From assembly GCF_001194135.2 (NCBI RefSeq), contig NC_068989.1, forward strand, positions 69,278,382-69,342,381: DNA of 64,000 nucleotides, read 5' to 3'. The notes under the pieces are model-generated. The model searched no databases. It saw only the letters and a program-made list of their open reading frames with translations, and was not told where the DNA came from. A program made the translations under genes and the position numbers. The stretch is from Octopus bimaculoides. Taxonomy: Eukaryota. Position 1 is the stretch's first letter. Every line of letters begins with the position of its first letter. Positions 1,944 to 57,112 of the stretch are shown piece after piece.

Positions 1944-2038
1944 CTCGTTAGAGAACTGTGTCCATACGAAAATATGAGATTGGAATGTTCTGTTTGATAA
2001 AATGAACGAGAAATATCTCTAGGGAATTTAGTACATTT
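1944..2038 (-). CDS. UVRAG: UVRAG coding exon 7 (KCTKFPRDISRSFYQTEHSNLIFSYGHSSLT + AG)
   Basis: Acceptor ttcttatttcag|, donor |gtaagc; 95 nt, phase 0 to 2; only open frame; matches the ..NSYDVFSLLR region. Confidence 0.88.
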
Positions 2039-3500: not shown

Positions 3501-3593
3501 TTCTAATTCTTCTTCTGTTGGTGCAACAAAGAAATGGTGAAACATGCCAAACACAAGGCTGTTTGGAGGGAACCGGATTCCATCTTTCATAGT
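3501..3593 (-). CDS. UVRAG: UVRAG coding exon 6 (TMKDGIRFPPNSLVFGMFHHFFVAPTEEELE)
   Basis: Acceptor tttgtcttttgtag|, donor |gtgagt; 93 nt, phase 0 to 0; resembles human NQNEIIFGLNDGYYGAP. Confidence 0.9.
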
Positions 3594-4006
3594 CTACAAA
3601 AGACAAACAGAAAAAACAAATTTGACATTAGAAACAATTTCACAAATACTATTTATTAACTGGAAACCTTACACTGGTTAGTTAAAAAACAAAACATTCC
3701 TTATTAAAATTAATAGGTTCATACGTCAATATAATAGTTTTCTATTTAAAAAACATACAAATATCAGCCTTAATACTTTTCAATTTTTATCATGAGTGAA
3801 TTTACAGAGTCATGAGTGCATTGGATAAAAAATGCTTTGCCAGTAAGTATATGTATTCTGAGTTCAAATGAAGTCAAGGTTAACTTTACTTTCATCTTTC
3901 TGGGGACTGATAAAATAAAGTATCAGTAAAATACCACTTAGCTACACACTTTCATCCCAAAATATTAAAGGTTAAGCTGGCCACAGAAGAATTTGAACAC
4001 CTATAT

Positions 4007-4653: not shown

Positions 4654-4748
4654 TTTTGTATCCTGTAGGTGAAGACAGGATAAAAACACTTCCCATTCTA
4701 AGAAAAGTTTGAAGACATCATGACCAACCCAAACCCTAACTAGCAATG
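4654..4748 (-). CDS. UVRAG: UVRAG coding exon 5 ([S]LLVRVWVGHDVFKLFLEWEVFLSCLHLQDTK)
   Basis: Acceptor ttctttaactctcactag| (U12-type branch), donor |gtaagt; 95 nt, phase 1 to 0; resembles CFVVKIWGG..LLIEWKVCLDGL. Confidence 0.9.
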
Positions 4749-6183
4749 CTAGTGAGAGTTAAAGAAAACTTTAAAGCAAGATTTCAAAACCAGGTAGAAT
4801 AGAAATTAAACATTTTACTGTGAGGTTAGAAAGAAAAGAAAGATAGTGAGTTATCTATAAATCCCATAGGAATTTGCAATAAAATGATGCAGCACACACA
4901 CATTCATAATATATAGACATATATAAAACTTACAATAGTCTTTGGCCATTATTGGCTAAAGCCTTGCTTAAACAGCACCACATGGAGTAGCCTTTTAAGT
5001 CAAATCGTGTGTGGGTTTCCAGAAATGGACTGTGCCTAAAATATCAGAGCTTGCTCTTCCTTGCAGTACATACTCTCATCAAATTTTATGCATTTTATTA
5101 ACTTTTTGTTTTGGCTGATGCAGACAACACTAGTTTTCTTGGACAACATTTTTTCCCCTCAACATTTCTAATATTACAACCAACACAATCATTTCAGCAA
5201 AGAGATACATTTTATTTCAGTCCTAATGACATGTTTGACCCTTTAGCATTTAAACCAGCTATATCCGGCCCAAATATTCTATCTGTTTTATGATCAACTT
5301 GGTTAGATCTAGCCTCTTACATATTAGTTGACAATGTCATTCTAAAAATAAACAATCACACCATCAAAATCTCAAAGCTATGAGACAATGCATGATGTCT
5401 TTAAAAGAATCAGAATAAATGAGCATTACATTTGACAGAATAATCTGAATGATAAAGGGTTAATGAAGGCAATGCATCTATCCTACAGGAATATAAATAC
5501 AAAATAATGAGCTACTGGCCACATGACGACGATTCCAAACCTTACTTAGATTGCTTGCATGGTCTAATGGTTAAGCACAAACTTGAATGAATAAGCTATC
5601 ACCATCTTGGCTGAAGTGTCATAATTCCTATTTCATTACTGTGCTCTAAGACAGGGCCAGCTTTAGGCATAGTGAAGTTTCAAGCTAAGAGGTTCTGTAG
5701 AGACCCTATTAAGAAATAATTAACAGAGAACTGAGTTGTATAACAACTAGAGTAAGAATGCAGCCAAGATGATAACAGATCCATGCAAAATAAGAGGGTT
5801 ACTCTTCTCAAATGCATAACTATAAAATAACAAAATCTTTTAAACTGCAAAACTAATAATCCTTTTTTTTAATATTTAGGATTAATTTGTTAATGTTAAT
5901 TGTTCCTAAAAAAGTTAAATCATCATGAATAATGAAACTCTAACAAATTGTAAAAATAATTAAAAAATCCATATTTTGAGAGGTTTCAAGCTGTAGCTTA
6001 TTTAATGAATGTCTAAATCTAGCCATGGTTCTCACTAAGACAGTGAATATATCTTACTCAACTTCCTGGTATCATAGCACTTAAATTTGAAGACAATTAT
6101 TCAACACTAACTGGAATTAGCAAATAGCAGCATGACTTGAGTCAAATCCTGTTTGATGAGAAACCTAATTTGAAAAAGGATAC
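4749..6183 (-). other. U12-type (minor spliceosome) GT-AG intron, UVRAG intron 4
   Basis: 5' splice site GTATCCTTT is an exact U12 consensus. Branch TTCTTTAAC (4766-4758) lies 9 nt before the AG end, with no extended polypyrimidine tract. These junctions restore the UVRAG frame. Confidence 0.88.
5239..5459. mobile_element. piggyBac-type MITE (related copies at ~27436-27615, ~31489-31697, ~60690-60910)
   Basis: TIRs ccctttagcatt / aatgataaaggg with TTAA(-like) flanks; internal sequence shared among four copies. Confidence 0.7.
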
Positions 6184-6247
6184 ACTTTTTACTTGTCTCA
6201 ACCTCTTCAGATTTAGTTGTGAGATCAAAGGCCTGCCATGTTGGATT
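6184..6247 (-). CDS. UVRAG: UVRAG coding exon 4 (NPTWQAFDLTTKSEEVETSKK + T)
   Basis: Acceptor ttttcaattttccag|, donor |GTATCCTTTT (U12 consensus); 64 nt, phase 0 to 1; NPTW is the C2-domain motif. Confidence 0.9.
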
Positions 6248-11837: not shown

Positions 11838-11872
11838 CAAAGACCCAGAAATTTTTTCACTGGTATAAAAGG
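11838..11872 (-). CDS. UVRAG: UVRAG coding exon 3 ([A]FYTSEKISGSL)
   Basis: Long T-tract acceptor ..tttttacag|, donor |gtaagt; 35 nt, phase 1 to 0; matches FYRSEVIKNSL. Confidence 0.92.
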
Positions 11873-14800
11873 CTGTAAAAAAAAAAAAAAAAAGAAAAAG
11901 AAAAAGTTAGTTATCAAAAGCAAACAATACATAACATTTCTCACATATATAATATATACTTTAAACTGACTAAAACAGGATAATAAAATGATGTGTTTGA
12001 TAGCAGATAAGAAAGTTAGCTCATAGGTGTATCTGACATTTTAATAATTTTGATTTTTTTTCAAAATTATCTTTTTTTTTTACCTCCAGTTTATCTAAGA
12101 GAAAAAAAGGTGAATTTATGAAATTATTCTTAATTATTCTGTGTGATGGGCTGCTTCACAACATGAGTTTCAGTTTGATCCCTCATCATTGCACTTTAGG
12201 CAAATAAGCTGCCACTGTCTCAGGTTAATGAATGCCTTATGAGTGGAATTTGGTAGACAGACACTGAGTAGAAGCTGTGTGTGTGTGTGTGTGTGTGTGT
12301 GCGTGGGTGCATGCGTGTGTGTGTCTGAGTGGCTAAGAAGTTTGCTTCTCAGCTACATGGTTTCAGGTTCAGTCCCCCCGCGTGGCATCTTGGTTAAGAG
12401 TCTTCTGCTATAACCCCAGGGAGACCAAAGCCCTGTGAGTGGGGATTTGTTGGAAGGAAACTGAAAGAAGTTTGTGTGCATGCAAGTGTGCGTGTGTTCA
12501 ATAGATTTTATTTATCTTTACAGATTCGATAAAGTAAGTGCAAGTGAAGTAATCAGGGAATCAATTTTAATCAACTGCATTCTTCCACCAAAATATTTGG
12601 CCATAAGCCTATGCTACATTCACTACCACCATCACCACCGTTAATGGTGGAAATCCTACTGGAATCAAATTTGTTTCTGCTCATTGTGGTTGATAAAGTG
12701 CAAGTAACTAACAATGATTTAATCAGCTCTACATTTATCTGTATAGGATAATATAGAATATATCAATGTGCTAAGTATATCAATATTATTTCTTTTCACA
12801 TGGTATAAAGGCCAAACAATATTGGAAACATGGAGCAGTGATCATTCATAGCTTTCCCAAGAACATTAGAACACTGAAATGGGCTCAATTGGGAATTGAA
12901 AGCACATCATAGTTATTGGTTTGCAAGAGGATTCTTTTTGCTTTACACTGTATGTCACAAGAAAGATATCAATAATAATAGCTTCTGATTTAGGTACAAG
13001 ACCATCAATTGTTAGGGGAAGTGATTAGTCAGTATCTTCAACCCTATACTAGACCGGTACTTTTTTCTTATTGACACCAGAGGGATGAAAGGCAAAGTTC
13101 ACCTAATGTGTGATTTGAACTGAGCGTAGTGGGTCATCACAAAAACTGCACAGTATTTCTTTCAGACACTGTAATGATTCTGCCAATAACCACCCTAAAG
13201 ATATCAATAATGATAAAAAAAAATGTGAAGGTGTTTGTTAAATTGCATAAAAGTTTAAGAAATTGCTTCTAATAACAATGTATTTCACTACAATAAGACT
13301 CTGAAGGTATTTCACTTTCTGAATACATTGTTACTATTTTGATATTTCTGCTAAAATCTAAGAAGTCTCGAACAGTGTTTAATTATCAATTTCCTTAGAT
13401 TCTTCCTGATAACAAAAGCCATTTCAATTTCATCATCATTCACTGTTGTAATATATAATGTTTTACCGTTAATCTGAAGGATTACCCAATACTTATTAAT
13501 AGACTACATACATATGTATTTGGTTGATTCAATAATTGTGTAAAACTATTTTGTTACATCTCAAGAACAAAGGACATTATTTCATATCAGTCACTGGAGA
13601 TAAAAAGAGTGATCTGTTATTTATATTGAGTCAATCTCCAGAGTCATAAATGGGAAGTTATAAATGATAAAAGCTACTTTAAAGAATGGGAGATGGGATA
13701 AATATAACACTATTGAGAGATATCAAAACAATATGATGGCAAAACAAAGAAAGAAAAAAGAAACATGATGGAATGGGACGACATACAAATTGCAACAAAT
13801 AACAGTATTCAGACTTTAATAAAGCACTGCTAGGAGTTACAAACATAAAACCAGCACTTTACAGAAAGGGTAAAACTAAAAGATAAAAATTTACCATGGA
13901 CTAGATTCTCAAATTGTTTTTGATCATGGATAACCTTAGTAATTTAAATTACTCTGTATATCATACTGACATTAGAAATGTTATTTGGAAGTAAACCAAA
14001 GAAAATTGTAAAATTAAGTTCTTTGATCTTTTAATCATTTCATTTATTTGATTTTGGCCATGCTGGGACACAACTTGAAGGGTTTTAGTCCAACAATTCA
14101 ACCCTGATAATGATTTTTGAAGTCTGGTACTTATTCTACCAGTCTCTTTTGCCAAACCACTAAGTTATAGAGACATAAGCATACTAACCAGTTGTCAAGT
14201 GGTAGGGGAACACACACACATACGTATATACATAAGGTACACACACATACATACATATGTATGACAGGCTTCTTATGAAGGTGATGCTTGTTTACAACCT
14301 TCACCTGATGTCAAATTTTGGTGGAAGAAGGTTTTAATTTGGATCACTTTAAAACGTAAAATTTGCTTCATTAAGCCAGGAGTGGTCTCAGGTGAGTTGG
14401 TATCAAAATGGTTAAATGAAGAAGGATACATTGTATAATGAAGTCCTTGATAAGGAAGGTTACAGCTAGAACACCTTTGATCATAAGTCACCTTCATCAA
14501 GGGAGACCTGAGGCTAAACAACACCTATATATGAAAAGTTTTAGTGAAAATAATAAAAATGTGAATCAAATATAATTTACAACCAAAGATGAAAATAATA
14601 TCTCAGAAAAAATTTCTTCTGTAATGCTAATTAAGCTGAAACCTAGCAGCCAATACATTCCCTAAGTAATAGTATAGTAATTAAAGAAAGCACACACTCG
14701 TTAGATGAAATGTTCAAGTAAATCAGTGTGTTCTTACTTCATGGGCAAAAAAGCAATGCTTAAAATTCTGTATTAATATCACAAAATTTTTTAAAGGAAT

Positions 14801-16734: not shown

Positions 16735-16855
16735 CTGGTGATTTTGCATCGGTATGTAGTGTAAAAAATGTTGACAATCTGTTATTGTCTGTCCCTAGTT
16801 CGTCTTTGTACACTAGATTTCGCAGGGAGACACTTTTCAAATGACGGATCCTTTT
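16735..16855 (-). CDS. UVRAG: UVRAG coding exon 2 (KRIRHLKSVSLRNLVYKDELGTDNNRLSTFFTLHTDAKSP + G)
   Basis: Acceptor cttcttatttgcag|, donor |gtaata; 121 nt, phase 0 to 1; matches RRLRHLRNIAARN..DTYFTLH. Confidence 0.93.
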
Positions 16856-43567: not shown

Positions 43568-43624
43568 CTGTTGAGTTGCCAATTCAAAGACATTGCTCAC
43601 GATGCAGTCACTATCACTAGCCAT
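43568..43624 (-). CDS. UVRAG: UVRAG coding exon 1 (MASDSDCIVSNVFELATQQ)
   Basis: ATG at 43624-43622 with an in-frame TAA 8 codons upstream; donor CAG|gtaaag; ELATQQ matches human ELPSQQ; lies in the CpG-retaining region. Implies a 26.7-kb first coding intron. Confidence 0.85.
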
Positions 43625-53290: not shown

Positions 53291-53396
53291 GTTCTTGCTT
53301 TGGTACTAAGTATACTAAAATTGGAATGATACAAAGATTAGCATGGCTCCTGCATAAGGATGACATGAAAATTTGTGAAGCGATCCATATTTTTTT
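53291..53396 (+). pseudogene. U6 snRNA pseudogene (near full length)
   Basis: gttcttgctttgg..tatactaaaattggaatgatacaaagattagcatggctcctgcataaggatgacatgaaaatttgtgaagcgatccatattttttt aligns end to end with U6. The ACAGAGA box has a 3-nt deletion and several CpG to TpG/CpA changes are present. Confidence 0.93.
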
Positions 53397-55799: not shown

Positions 55800-56790
55800 A
55801 CTCCTCCACTGCTAATTTGGTCAACTAAATAATGGAAACTGTCTACTACCTCTAACGATCTCCCTTGGCATTGGAGGAAATCTATTTCCTAAGTGTTCTT
55901 TATTATTCCTGCAGATCTGCCACATACACAAAGACTACTTTCTCTATTCACCTTTTTGTGATTTGACTGCATCTCTGTGTTCATAGCTTGCATTGGATAC
56001 ACTGTATGGAATTTCTATCTATGGTTTTTCTACATATCAAGCAGATCCATTTTTATCTGCTTTCCTGCTTACTAGTACTTTGGTCTTTGCTAAATTAACA
56101 GTAAGGGTCTTTGACTCTAGACCTTGCTTCCACATTTGAAATTTCTTCTCTTAATTCTACTATAGATTCAGCTGTAAGAACAAAGTTATCATCATAGAGA
56201 AGCTCTCACGAGCAACCAGTTTTAAATTCTTCTGTTATGGCCTGGAGAATTATGATAAACAAAATTGAGCTGAAAACAAACCTTGGTGGACTCCTACCTG
56301 CATGCTAAATTTACTGCTATACTTATTCCTGACGTTCACCTTACTGACAGCATCCCTGTATATGACTTGACAGCTCTCATCAGTCACTCATCTACCCCTA
56401 GTTTCTAAAGCAACCACCAGATGAGAGAGTGGGGGACCCTGTCAAAGGTTTTCTCCATATTGACAAATGCCAAGTACAGGGGTTTATTTTTGGCCAAATG
56501 CTTCTCCTGCAGTTGCCTCACCAGGAAGATAGCACCAAACCATCTCATCTATGCTAACTCTCTTCCTAATTAGTTGAGCTATGACTCTTTCTGTAACTTC
56601 CATGATCTAGGCCAACAATTTGATACCTCTGTGGTTACTTCTAGGGCATCTCCTTTACCTTTGTAGCAATTGACTTCAATGTTGCTACACCAGTCATTGG
56701 GTATGACCACAGCCTGGTCAAACTGATTAGCTATATGGGTGACTAGGCTGTATCTCACTCTGCCAGATATTTTAAGCTTCTCGTAAATAA
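55800..56790 (-). mobile_element. RTE reverse transcriptase fragment
   Basis: - strand remnants KALGPSG..IPNDW..CYKGKGDALE and KPLYLAFVNMEKTFDRVP. Confidence 0.8.
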
Positions 56791-57112
56791 TTCCTGATGG
56801 ACCAAGAGCTTTGGGCTTTTTCAGTTTCCTCCAATCAAATCTACTCACAAGGCCTAGAACTTTAAGAGAAGACACTTGCCCAATGTACCACACACACAAT
56901 AGGACTGAATCTAAAGTTGCATGGTTGGGAAGCAAGCTTCTTAACCATACAGTCATTCTTTTCACTGTTTATAAAGTAATACTGATGGTGGTTAATTATT
57001 AGGCAGTCACACTTAATACTTCGTAGTTATTATTTTTTTCTTTTTTTGAAACGTAAATAAAATTCCACTATTAAATGTTTCAAGTTTTACAAATTGTATT
57101 TTTATTTTACAG

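Follow-up and report, generated by a model that had tools for sequence, protein, structure and literature searches.

The UVRAG gene of Octopus bimaculoides raises the question of whether the intron interrupting its presumed C2-coding region belongs to the minor, U12-type class and, if so, how old such an intron may be and whether the output of the autophagy PI3K complex II would depend on it. In order to answer this question, we examined the window, that is, the whole 64-kb stretch of DNA analysed here, and compared the intron with its counterparts in other animals.

The host gene is UVRAG, since the fragment encoded in the window is identical over 168/168 residues to the O. bimaculoides proteins XP_014768618.1 and XP_014768617.1, and over 167/168 to the proteins of O. 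sinensis and O. vulgaris. Exons were first localised by tblastn with a human UVRAG sequence, which was used as a lead only, and seven were placed on the minus strand by mapping the O. sinensis protein P0293 exactly onto the window (Table 1). The gene extends past the left edge of the window, and the exons for the coiled coil and the C-terminus lie outside it. A vertebrate UVRAG profile run against 1.84 billion representatives gave the UVRAG-like protein of Argonauta hians (P0162) as the closest relative, with 87% identity, and a later search returned the O. sinensis UVRAG isoforms, with the O. vulgaris and O. bimaculoides proteins as cluster mates. The full-length O. bimaculoides protein scores 31.8 bits with PF10186, just below the curated cut-off of 33.2; UVRAG orthologues bear PF10186 together with PF17649.

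Table 1. Features of UVRAG in the window (a slash marks an exon-intron border).
Feature	Position	Strand	Basis
UVRAG exon 1, coding part (MASDSDCIVSNVFELATQQ), donor cag/GTAAAG	43568..43624	-	exact mapping of P0293 and sequence
UVRAG exon 2 (KRIRHLKSV...HTDAKSP), phase 1 end, U2-type flanks	16735..16855	-	exact mapping
UVRAG exon 3, 35-nt microexon (AFYTSEKISGSL), T-rich acceptor, donor GTAAGT	11838..11872	-	exact mapping
UVRAG exon 4 (NPTWQAFDLTTKSEEVETSKK and first base of the Ser codon)	6184..6247	-	sequence, homology, exact mapping
Cryptic U2-like donor caa/GTAAAAAG (caa/GTAAAA, break at 6193/6192), 9 nt upstream of the U12-type donor, same phase	6185..6192	-	sequence, junction scan
UVRAG intron 4, 1435 nt, U12-type GT-AG, phase 1	4749..6183	-	sequence, mapping, MIDB look-up, comparison
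U12-type 5' splice site GTATCCTTT, 9/9 to RTATCCTTT, T at -1	6175..6183	-	sequence, motif scan
Branch-point sequence TTCTTTAAC (8-mer TCTTTAAC at 4765..4758)	4758..4766	-	sequence, motif scan
3' splice-site AG	4749..4750	-	sequence, exact mapping
UVRAG exon 5 ((S)LLVRVWVGHDVFKLFLEWEVFLSCLHLQDTK), donor aaa/GTAAGT	4654..4748	-	sequence and exact mapping
UVRAG exon 6 (TMKDGIRFPPNSLVFGMFHHFFVAPTEEELE)	3501..3594	-	exact mapping
UVRAG exon 7 (KCTKFPRD...SYGHSSLT-R)	1944..2038	-	exact mapping

Some features of the surrounding DNA deserve mention in their own right. The 12-codon block of exon 3 ([AE]FY.SE......) forms a separate small exon in 9/10 mapped genes, from bird to octopus, and is fused with the neighbouring exons in Nilaparvata. 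Intron 1 (16856-43567, minus strand) spans 26.7 kb in octopus versus 12.3 kb for its Argonauta counterpart. CA/TG microsatellites abound in the window, as do repeat-like open reading frames, among them a possibly reverse-transcriptase-like fragment at 56579-56965 (minus strand). Positions 53295-53394 of the plus strand match U6 snRNA (Rfam RF00026, 81 bits, E=4e-19), and a T-run comes after the match. It lies some 10 kb upstream of the first UVRAG exon. It departs from the canonical U6 sequence in its 5' stem-loop and has ACAAAGA in place of the ACAGAGA box; a U6 pseudogene or retrocopy is its probable identity.

Read from the minus strand, intron 4 begins at ...gagacaagtaaaaagt/GTATCCTTTTTC... 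(with a longer stretch of exon, ...GAGACAAGTAAAAAGT/GTATCCTTTTTC), with the break at 6184/6183, and ends at ...agTTTTCTTTAACtctcactAG/cattgctagtt... (likewise ...AGTTTTCTTTAACTCTCACTAG/CATTGCTAGTT...), with the break at 4749/4748, which gives the outline AGT/GTATCCTTT ... TTCTTTAAC-tctcact-AG/CAT. The intron is in phase 1: exon 4 ends with the codons of ETSKK and a single t, which the 'ca' of exon 5 completes to a serine codon. The last base of the branch motif lies 9 nt from the end of the intron and the likely branch adenosine (4759/4760) 10-11 nt from it, while the 8-mer TCTTTAAC differs from TCCTTAAC by one mismatch (C-to-T) and likewise by one from TCCTTRAC. The donor, the branch motif and the terminal AG are all as the sequence-only reading had described them. 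Rfam and tRNA scans of the intron interior gave no matches.

Such motifs could arise by chance in an AT-rich genome, in which case intron 4 would be an ordinary U2-type GT-AG intron. Either motif alone is indeed expected about once per 64 kb: RTATCCTTT has a single copy in the window with both strands counted, against 1.77 expected, and TTCTTTAAC-N5-12-AG also has a single copy, both strands counted, against 0.70 expected. The counts alone are thus not significant. The placement is not chance, since both sole copies are on the coding strand and coincide precisely with the two exon borders that homology indicates. Furthermore, by inspection, the donor AGT/GTATCC fits the U1-pairing consensus MAG/GTRAGT at only 4/9 positions (-3 and +1 to +3), which argues against an ordinary major-class donor.

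The strength of these signals was assessed by looking up identical 12-mers of accepted human and mouse minor introns in the MIDB tables. The 5' splice-site 12-mer AGTGTATCCTTT is identical to one in CFAP46, scored 96.06/95.25, and the branch-site 12-mer TTTTCTTTAACT to one in human RASGRP3, scored 90.97, both scores deriving from human and mouse matrices and not from octopus-trained ones. The published MIDB cut-offs demand, for a minor 5' splice site, a score above 50 that also clearly exceeds the major one, and for a branch site a score above 65; the optimum between branch site and 3' splice site is quoted there as 11-13 nt. The C-to-T variant is a common one in accepted minor introns, the MIDB table containing TCTTTAAC 49 times, against 243 for TCCTTAAC.

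Several pairs of splice sites might in principle join exons 4 and 5. Of the junctions lying no more than 40 nt from the two exon edges, eight keep the reading frame without meeting a stop, so that the proposal that only one junction restores homology was slightly overstated. What stands is that 6184/4748 is the sole junction reproducing the RefSeq protein at the nucleotide level and the only one giving the gap-free sequence common to all cephalopod orthologues. The proteins of O. sinensis, O. vulgaris and Argonauta share SKK-S-LLVRVW across it, and intron-free Logan RNA-seq contigs of another cephalopod encode DTSKKSLLVRVW; proteins with SKKSLLVRVW translated from such contigs are P0295 (3 contigs), P0400 (20 contigs), P0403 and P0404. 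Together, the annotated proteins and the RNA-seq contigs of this related cephalopod suggest that 6184/4748 is the junction used in O. bimaculoides mRNA.

A more complex situation would be that of a dual or hybrid intron, in which a substantial fraction of transcripts is processed by the major spliceosome through the upstream donor caa/GTAAAA, which is of moderate strength, and the same acceptor, yielding an isoform without Ser-Lys-Lys. The junction 6193/4748 is in frame and stop-free, the intron is rich in pyrimidines over its final 20 nt, and Argonauta presents an even better donor, cca/GTAAGA, at the equivalent place (locus L002, about 14079-14086), 9 nt upstream of its U12-type donor; sites used by both spliceosomes are reported in published work (PMC10853781). 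However, the GTAA is formed by the Ser-Lys(-Lys) codons themselves, SKK is kept in every cephalopod protein and in every RNA-seq-derived contig covering the site, neither the Ser-Lys residues nor GTAA are kept in Argopecten or Lingula, and what is conserved across phyla are the U12 signals and not the cryptic donor. We therefore regard substantial dual use as distinctly unlikely, though some U2-type or dual use may occur; the GTAAAA/GTAAGA donor is a candidate cryptic site that may be used if minor splicing fails.

The junction supported here also bears on annotation. The concern that a pipeline could miss this donor proved unfounded, because GT-AG U12-type introns carry the canonical terminal dinucleotides and the junction is present in all annotations examined, namely the RefSeq/GenBank proteins of O. 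bimaculoides, O. sinensis, O. vulgaris and Argonauta and the mapped models of Argopecten, Lingula, Limulus, Diadema and Branchiostoma. Octopus gene models as they stand are correct at this point.

A comparison of position and phase with UVRAG orthologues had been suggested by the sequence-only reading, and we carried it out on ten loci, from Octopus, Argonauta, Argopecten, Lingula, Limulus, Diadema, Branchiostoma, Lottia, Nilaparvata and the bird Upupa epops, by mapping the proteins exactly onto the DNA. Among the 128 introns of these ten genes, exactly seven start with GTATCCTT, and all seven are intron 4; the remaining 121 show at least two mismatches. The six found besides that of octopus read aat/GTATCCTTC ... 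TTTTCCTTAACtgtcccaacAG in Argonauta hians, aat/GTATCCTTT ... TACCTTGACcactgtccAG in Argopecten irradians, ctt/GTATCCTTA ... TTTCCTCAACactggtgctAG in Lingula anatina, tgg/GTATCCTTT ... ATACCTTAACgaatttaatcAG in Limulus polyphemus, ctt/GTATCCTTG ... AATCCTTGACatacgattcctccAG in Branchiostoma belcheri and cct/GTATCCTTA ... TCCTTAGC in Diadema antillarum. In all seven the branch site has at most one mismatch to TCCTTRAC. In six species 10-16 nt separate the branch adenosine from the 3' end; the best match in Diadema, TCCTTAGC, is unusually far, with its adenosine 22 nt from the end. In Lottia gigantea (gag/GTAAGC; locus L006, 2114) and Nilaparvata lugens (aag/GTAATA; locus L011, 2111) the intron instead has a U2-type donor, a polypyrimidine tract and CAG.

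The position of intron 4 is 21 codons and one base after the N of NPTW. In an alignment of 35 sequences the split codons of the eight species placed (8/8) fall in one column, equivalent to human C112, all in phase 1; Limulus, the U12-type species outside this placement, has the same phase. The intron is thus found with U12 signals and identical phase in six lineages other than octopus, and in one column for the five that were placed. The finding of GTATCCTT and a correctly spaced branch site at the orthologous intron of six other lineages, in three bilaterian superclades, and in 0/121 other UVRAG introns leaves almost no credence for a fortuitous resemblance, which this ten-gene comparison effectively refutes. 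Motif identity, MIDB table scores and conservation at one orthologous position all bear out the assignment of 6183..4749 as a U12-type GT-AG intron in phase 1 after ETSKK.

Whether vertebrate UVRAG has a U12-type intron at the same position had been left open by the sequence-only reading. In Upupa epops the segment from NPTW to GQQ forms a single exon of 162 nt, with nothing interrupting the codon that corresponds to human C112, and UVRAG does not figure in MIDB's lists of human and mouse minor introns, in which VPS16, VPS35, MAPK8, UBL5 and USP14 are present as controls. The U12 form is found in cephalopods, a bivalve, a brachiopod, a horseshoe crab, a sea urchin and amphioxus, the U2 form is seen in a limpet and a planthopper, and the intron is absent in a bird.

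Since the U12-type form occurs in Lophotrochozoa, Ecdysozoa and Deuterostomia, intron 4 was most likely U12-type already in the bilaterian ancestor, with two conversions to U2 and a loss in at least one vertebrate lineage. The Lottia and Nilaparvata versions, judged by their splice signals, are best read as U12-to-U2 class conversions. The base at position -1 fits this model, being T in 6/7 U12 versions (G in Limulus) and G in both U2 versions. The class-conversion model is discussed by Moyer et al., and the U2-to-U12 direction is considered very unlikely. The alternative would be that the intron is not ancestral and that gain of a U12-type intron, or U2-to-U12 conversion, took place independently in several lineages. 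The sample is thin in this respect, with ten bilaterian species and no non-bilaterian, which also places an origin before Bilateria outside the reach of the dating. Yet position and phase are identical in cephalopods, bivalve, brachiopod, chelicerate, echinoderm and cephalochordate, and a change from U2-type to U12-type is one that the conversion model disfavours. We find repeated independent acquisition highly improbable. If the ancestral reading is right, a single locus displays all three fates of an ancestral U12-type intron: retention, U2 conversion (with G at -1) and apparent loss.

Taking all these data together, we are highly confident that the interval 6183..4749 on the minus strand is UVRAG intron 4, a GT-AG intron of the U12 type that most likely descends from the bilaterian ancestor. 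From its signals we infer that it would be removed by the minor spliceosome. Following the established steps of minor splicing, U11 snRNA and later U6atac would pair with the GUAUCCUUU donor, and U12 snRNA with UUCUUUAAC, in which the C-to-U change may still permit a G-U wobble, leaving the putative branch adenosine at 10-11 nt from the AG. The U11/U12 di-snRNP would thereby define the intron, and its excision would join 6184 to 4748, creating the serine codon (t+ca) with which a predicted β-strand in the C2-like N-terminal domain begins.

The location within a C2 domain is a reasonable assignment based on modelling and alignment. The Pfam C2 profile (PF00168) gave no match with the octopus UVRAG N-terminus. 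The AlphaFold model of O. sinensis UVRAG, built from the 35 aligned sequences, predicts eight β-strands within residues 25-147, with block-mean pLDDT values mostly of 67-87 over this range, dropping to 55 over residues 121-130. The split codon encodes residue 93, with which the strand 93-101 begins. Furthermore, the spliced octopus peptide aligns with the human UVRAG chains 7bl1/9rx5 (E=8.7e-9) over human residues 40-168 and without gaps over the junction.

Retention of intron 4 would bring a stop after 25 further codons, and a correct UVRAG mRNA therefore requires its removal. The suggestion that the output of complex II depends on minor splicing is true only in the trivial sense in which it holds for any gene with a U12-type intron, and the intron by itself is no demonstration of a special regulation of autophagy. 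The accompanying statement that minor introns are often rate-limiting is contested, as the MIDB paper reports efficient splicing of many of them. One might still imagine the intron as a dosage valve, kept since the bilaterian ancestor, in which slow or regulated minor splicing together with the stop on retention would couple the supply of PI3KC3 complex II to the minor spliceosome in invertebrates, a coupling that vertebrates would have dropped on losing the intron; we hold this conjecture to be unlikely.

With regard to existing catalogues, octopus goes unmentioned in the IAOD paper (Moyer et al.), which deals with 24 genomes. Molluscs as a group retain minor introns, and a genome-wide survey has classified the minor introns of O. 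sinensis, Lingula and Limulus and noted an enrichment in molluscs. UVRAG intron 4 is therefore probably already contained in bulk minor-intron catalogues, though not individually described: the searchable full-text literature gave no paper linking UVRAG with minor splicing. UVRAG joins the genes with a minor intron in many invertebrates, though it is not a minor-intron gene in human and mouse, and human-centred catalogues would miss it.

Compared with known systems, vertebrate UVRAG shares with the octopus gene the intron positions SL/NPTW and GQQ/I, both in phase 0, and the 12-codon microexon (Upupa epops), as well as a gap-free protein alignment across the site (human 7bl1), and differs in the absence of intron 4 in the Upupa epops gene. 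The Lottia and Nilaparvata introns share position and phase 1 with that of octopus, but have U2 donors and CAG acceptors without the U12 motifs. The GT-AG U12-type introns of human and mouse listed in MIDB, such as those of CFAP46 and RASGRP3, have the same 12-mers, a branch site near the 3' end and a phase other than 0, whereas their host genes are others than UVRAG. The orthologous U12-type introns of the six other lineages have in common with the octopus intron the phase (6/6), the GTATCCTT donor, a TCCTTRAC-like branch site and the alignment column (5/5 placed), while their lengths range from 237 to 5173 nt and the branch site is a perfect TTCCTTAAC in Argonauta versus TTCTTTAAC in octopus.
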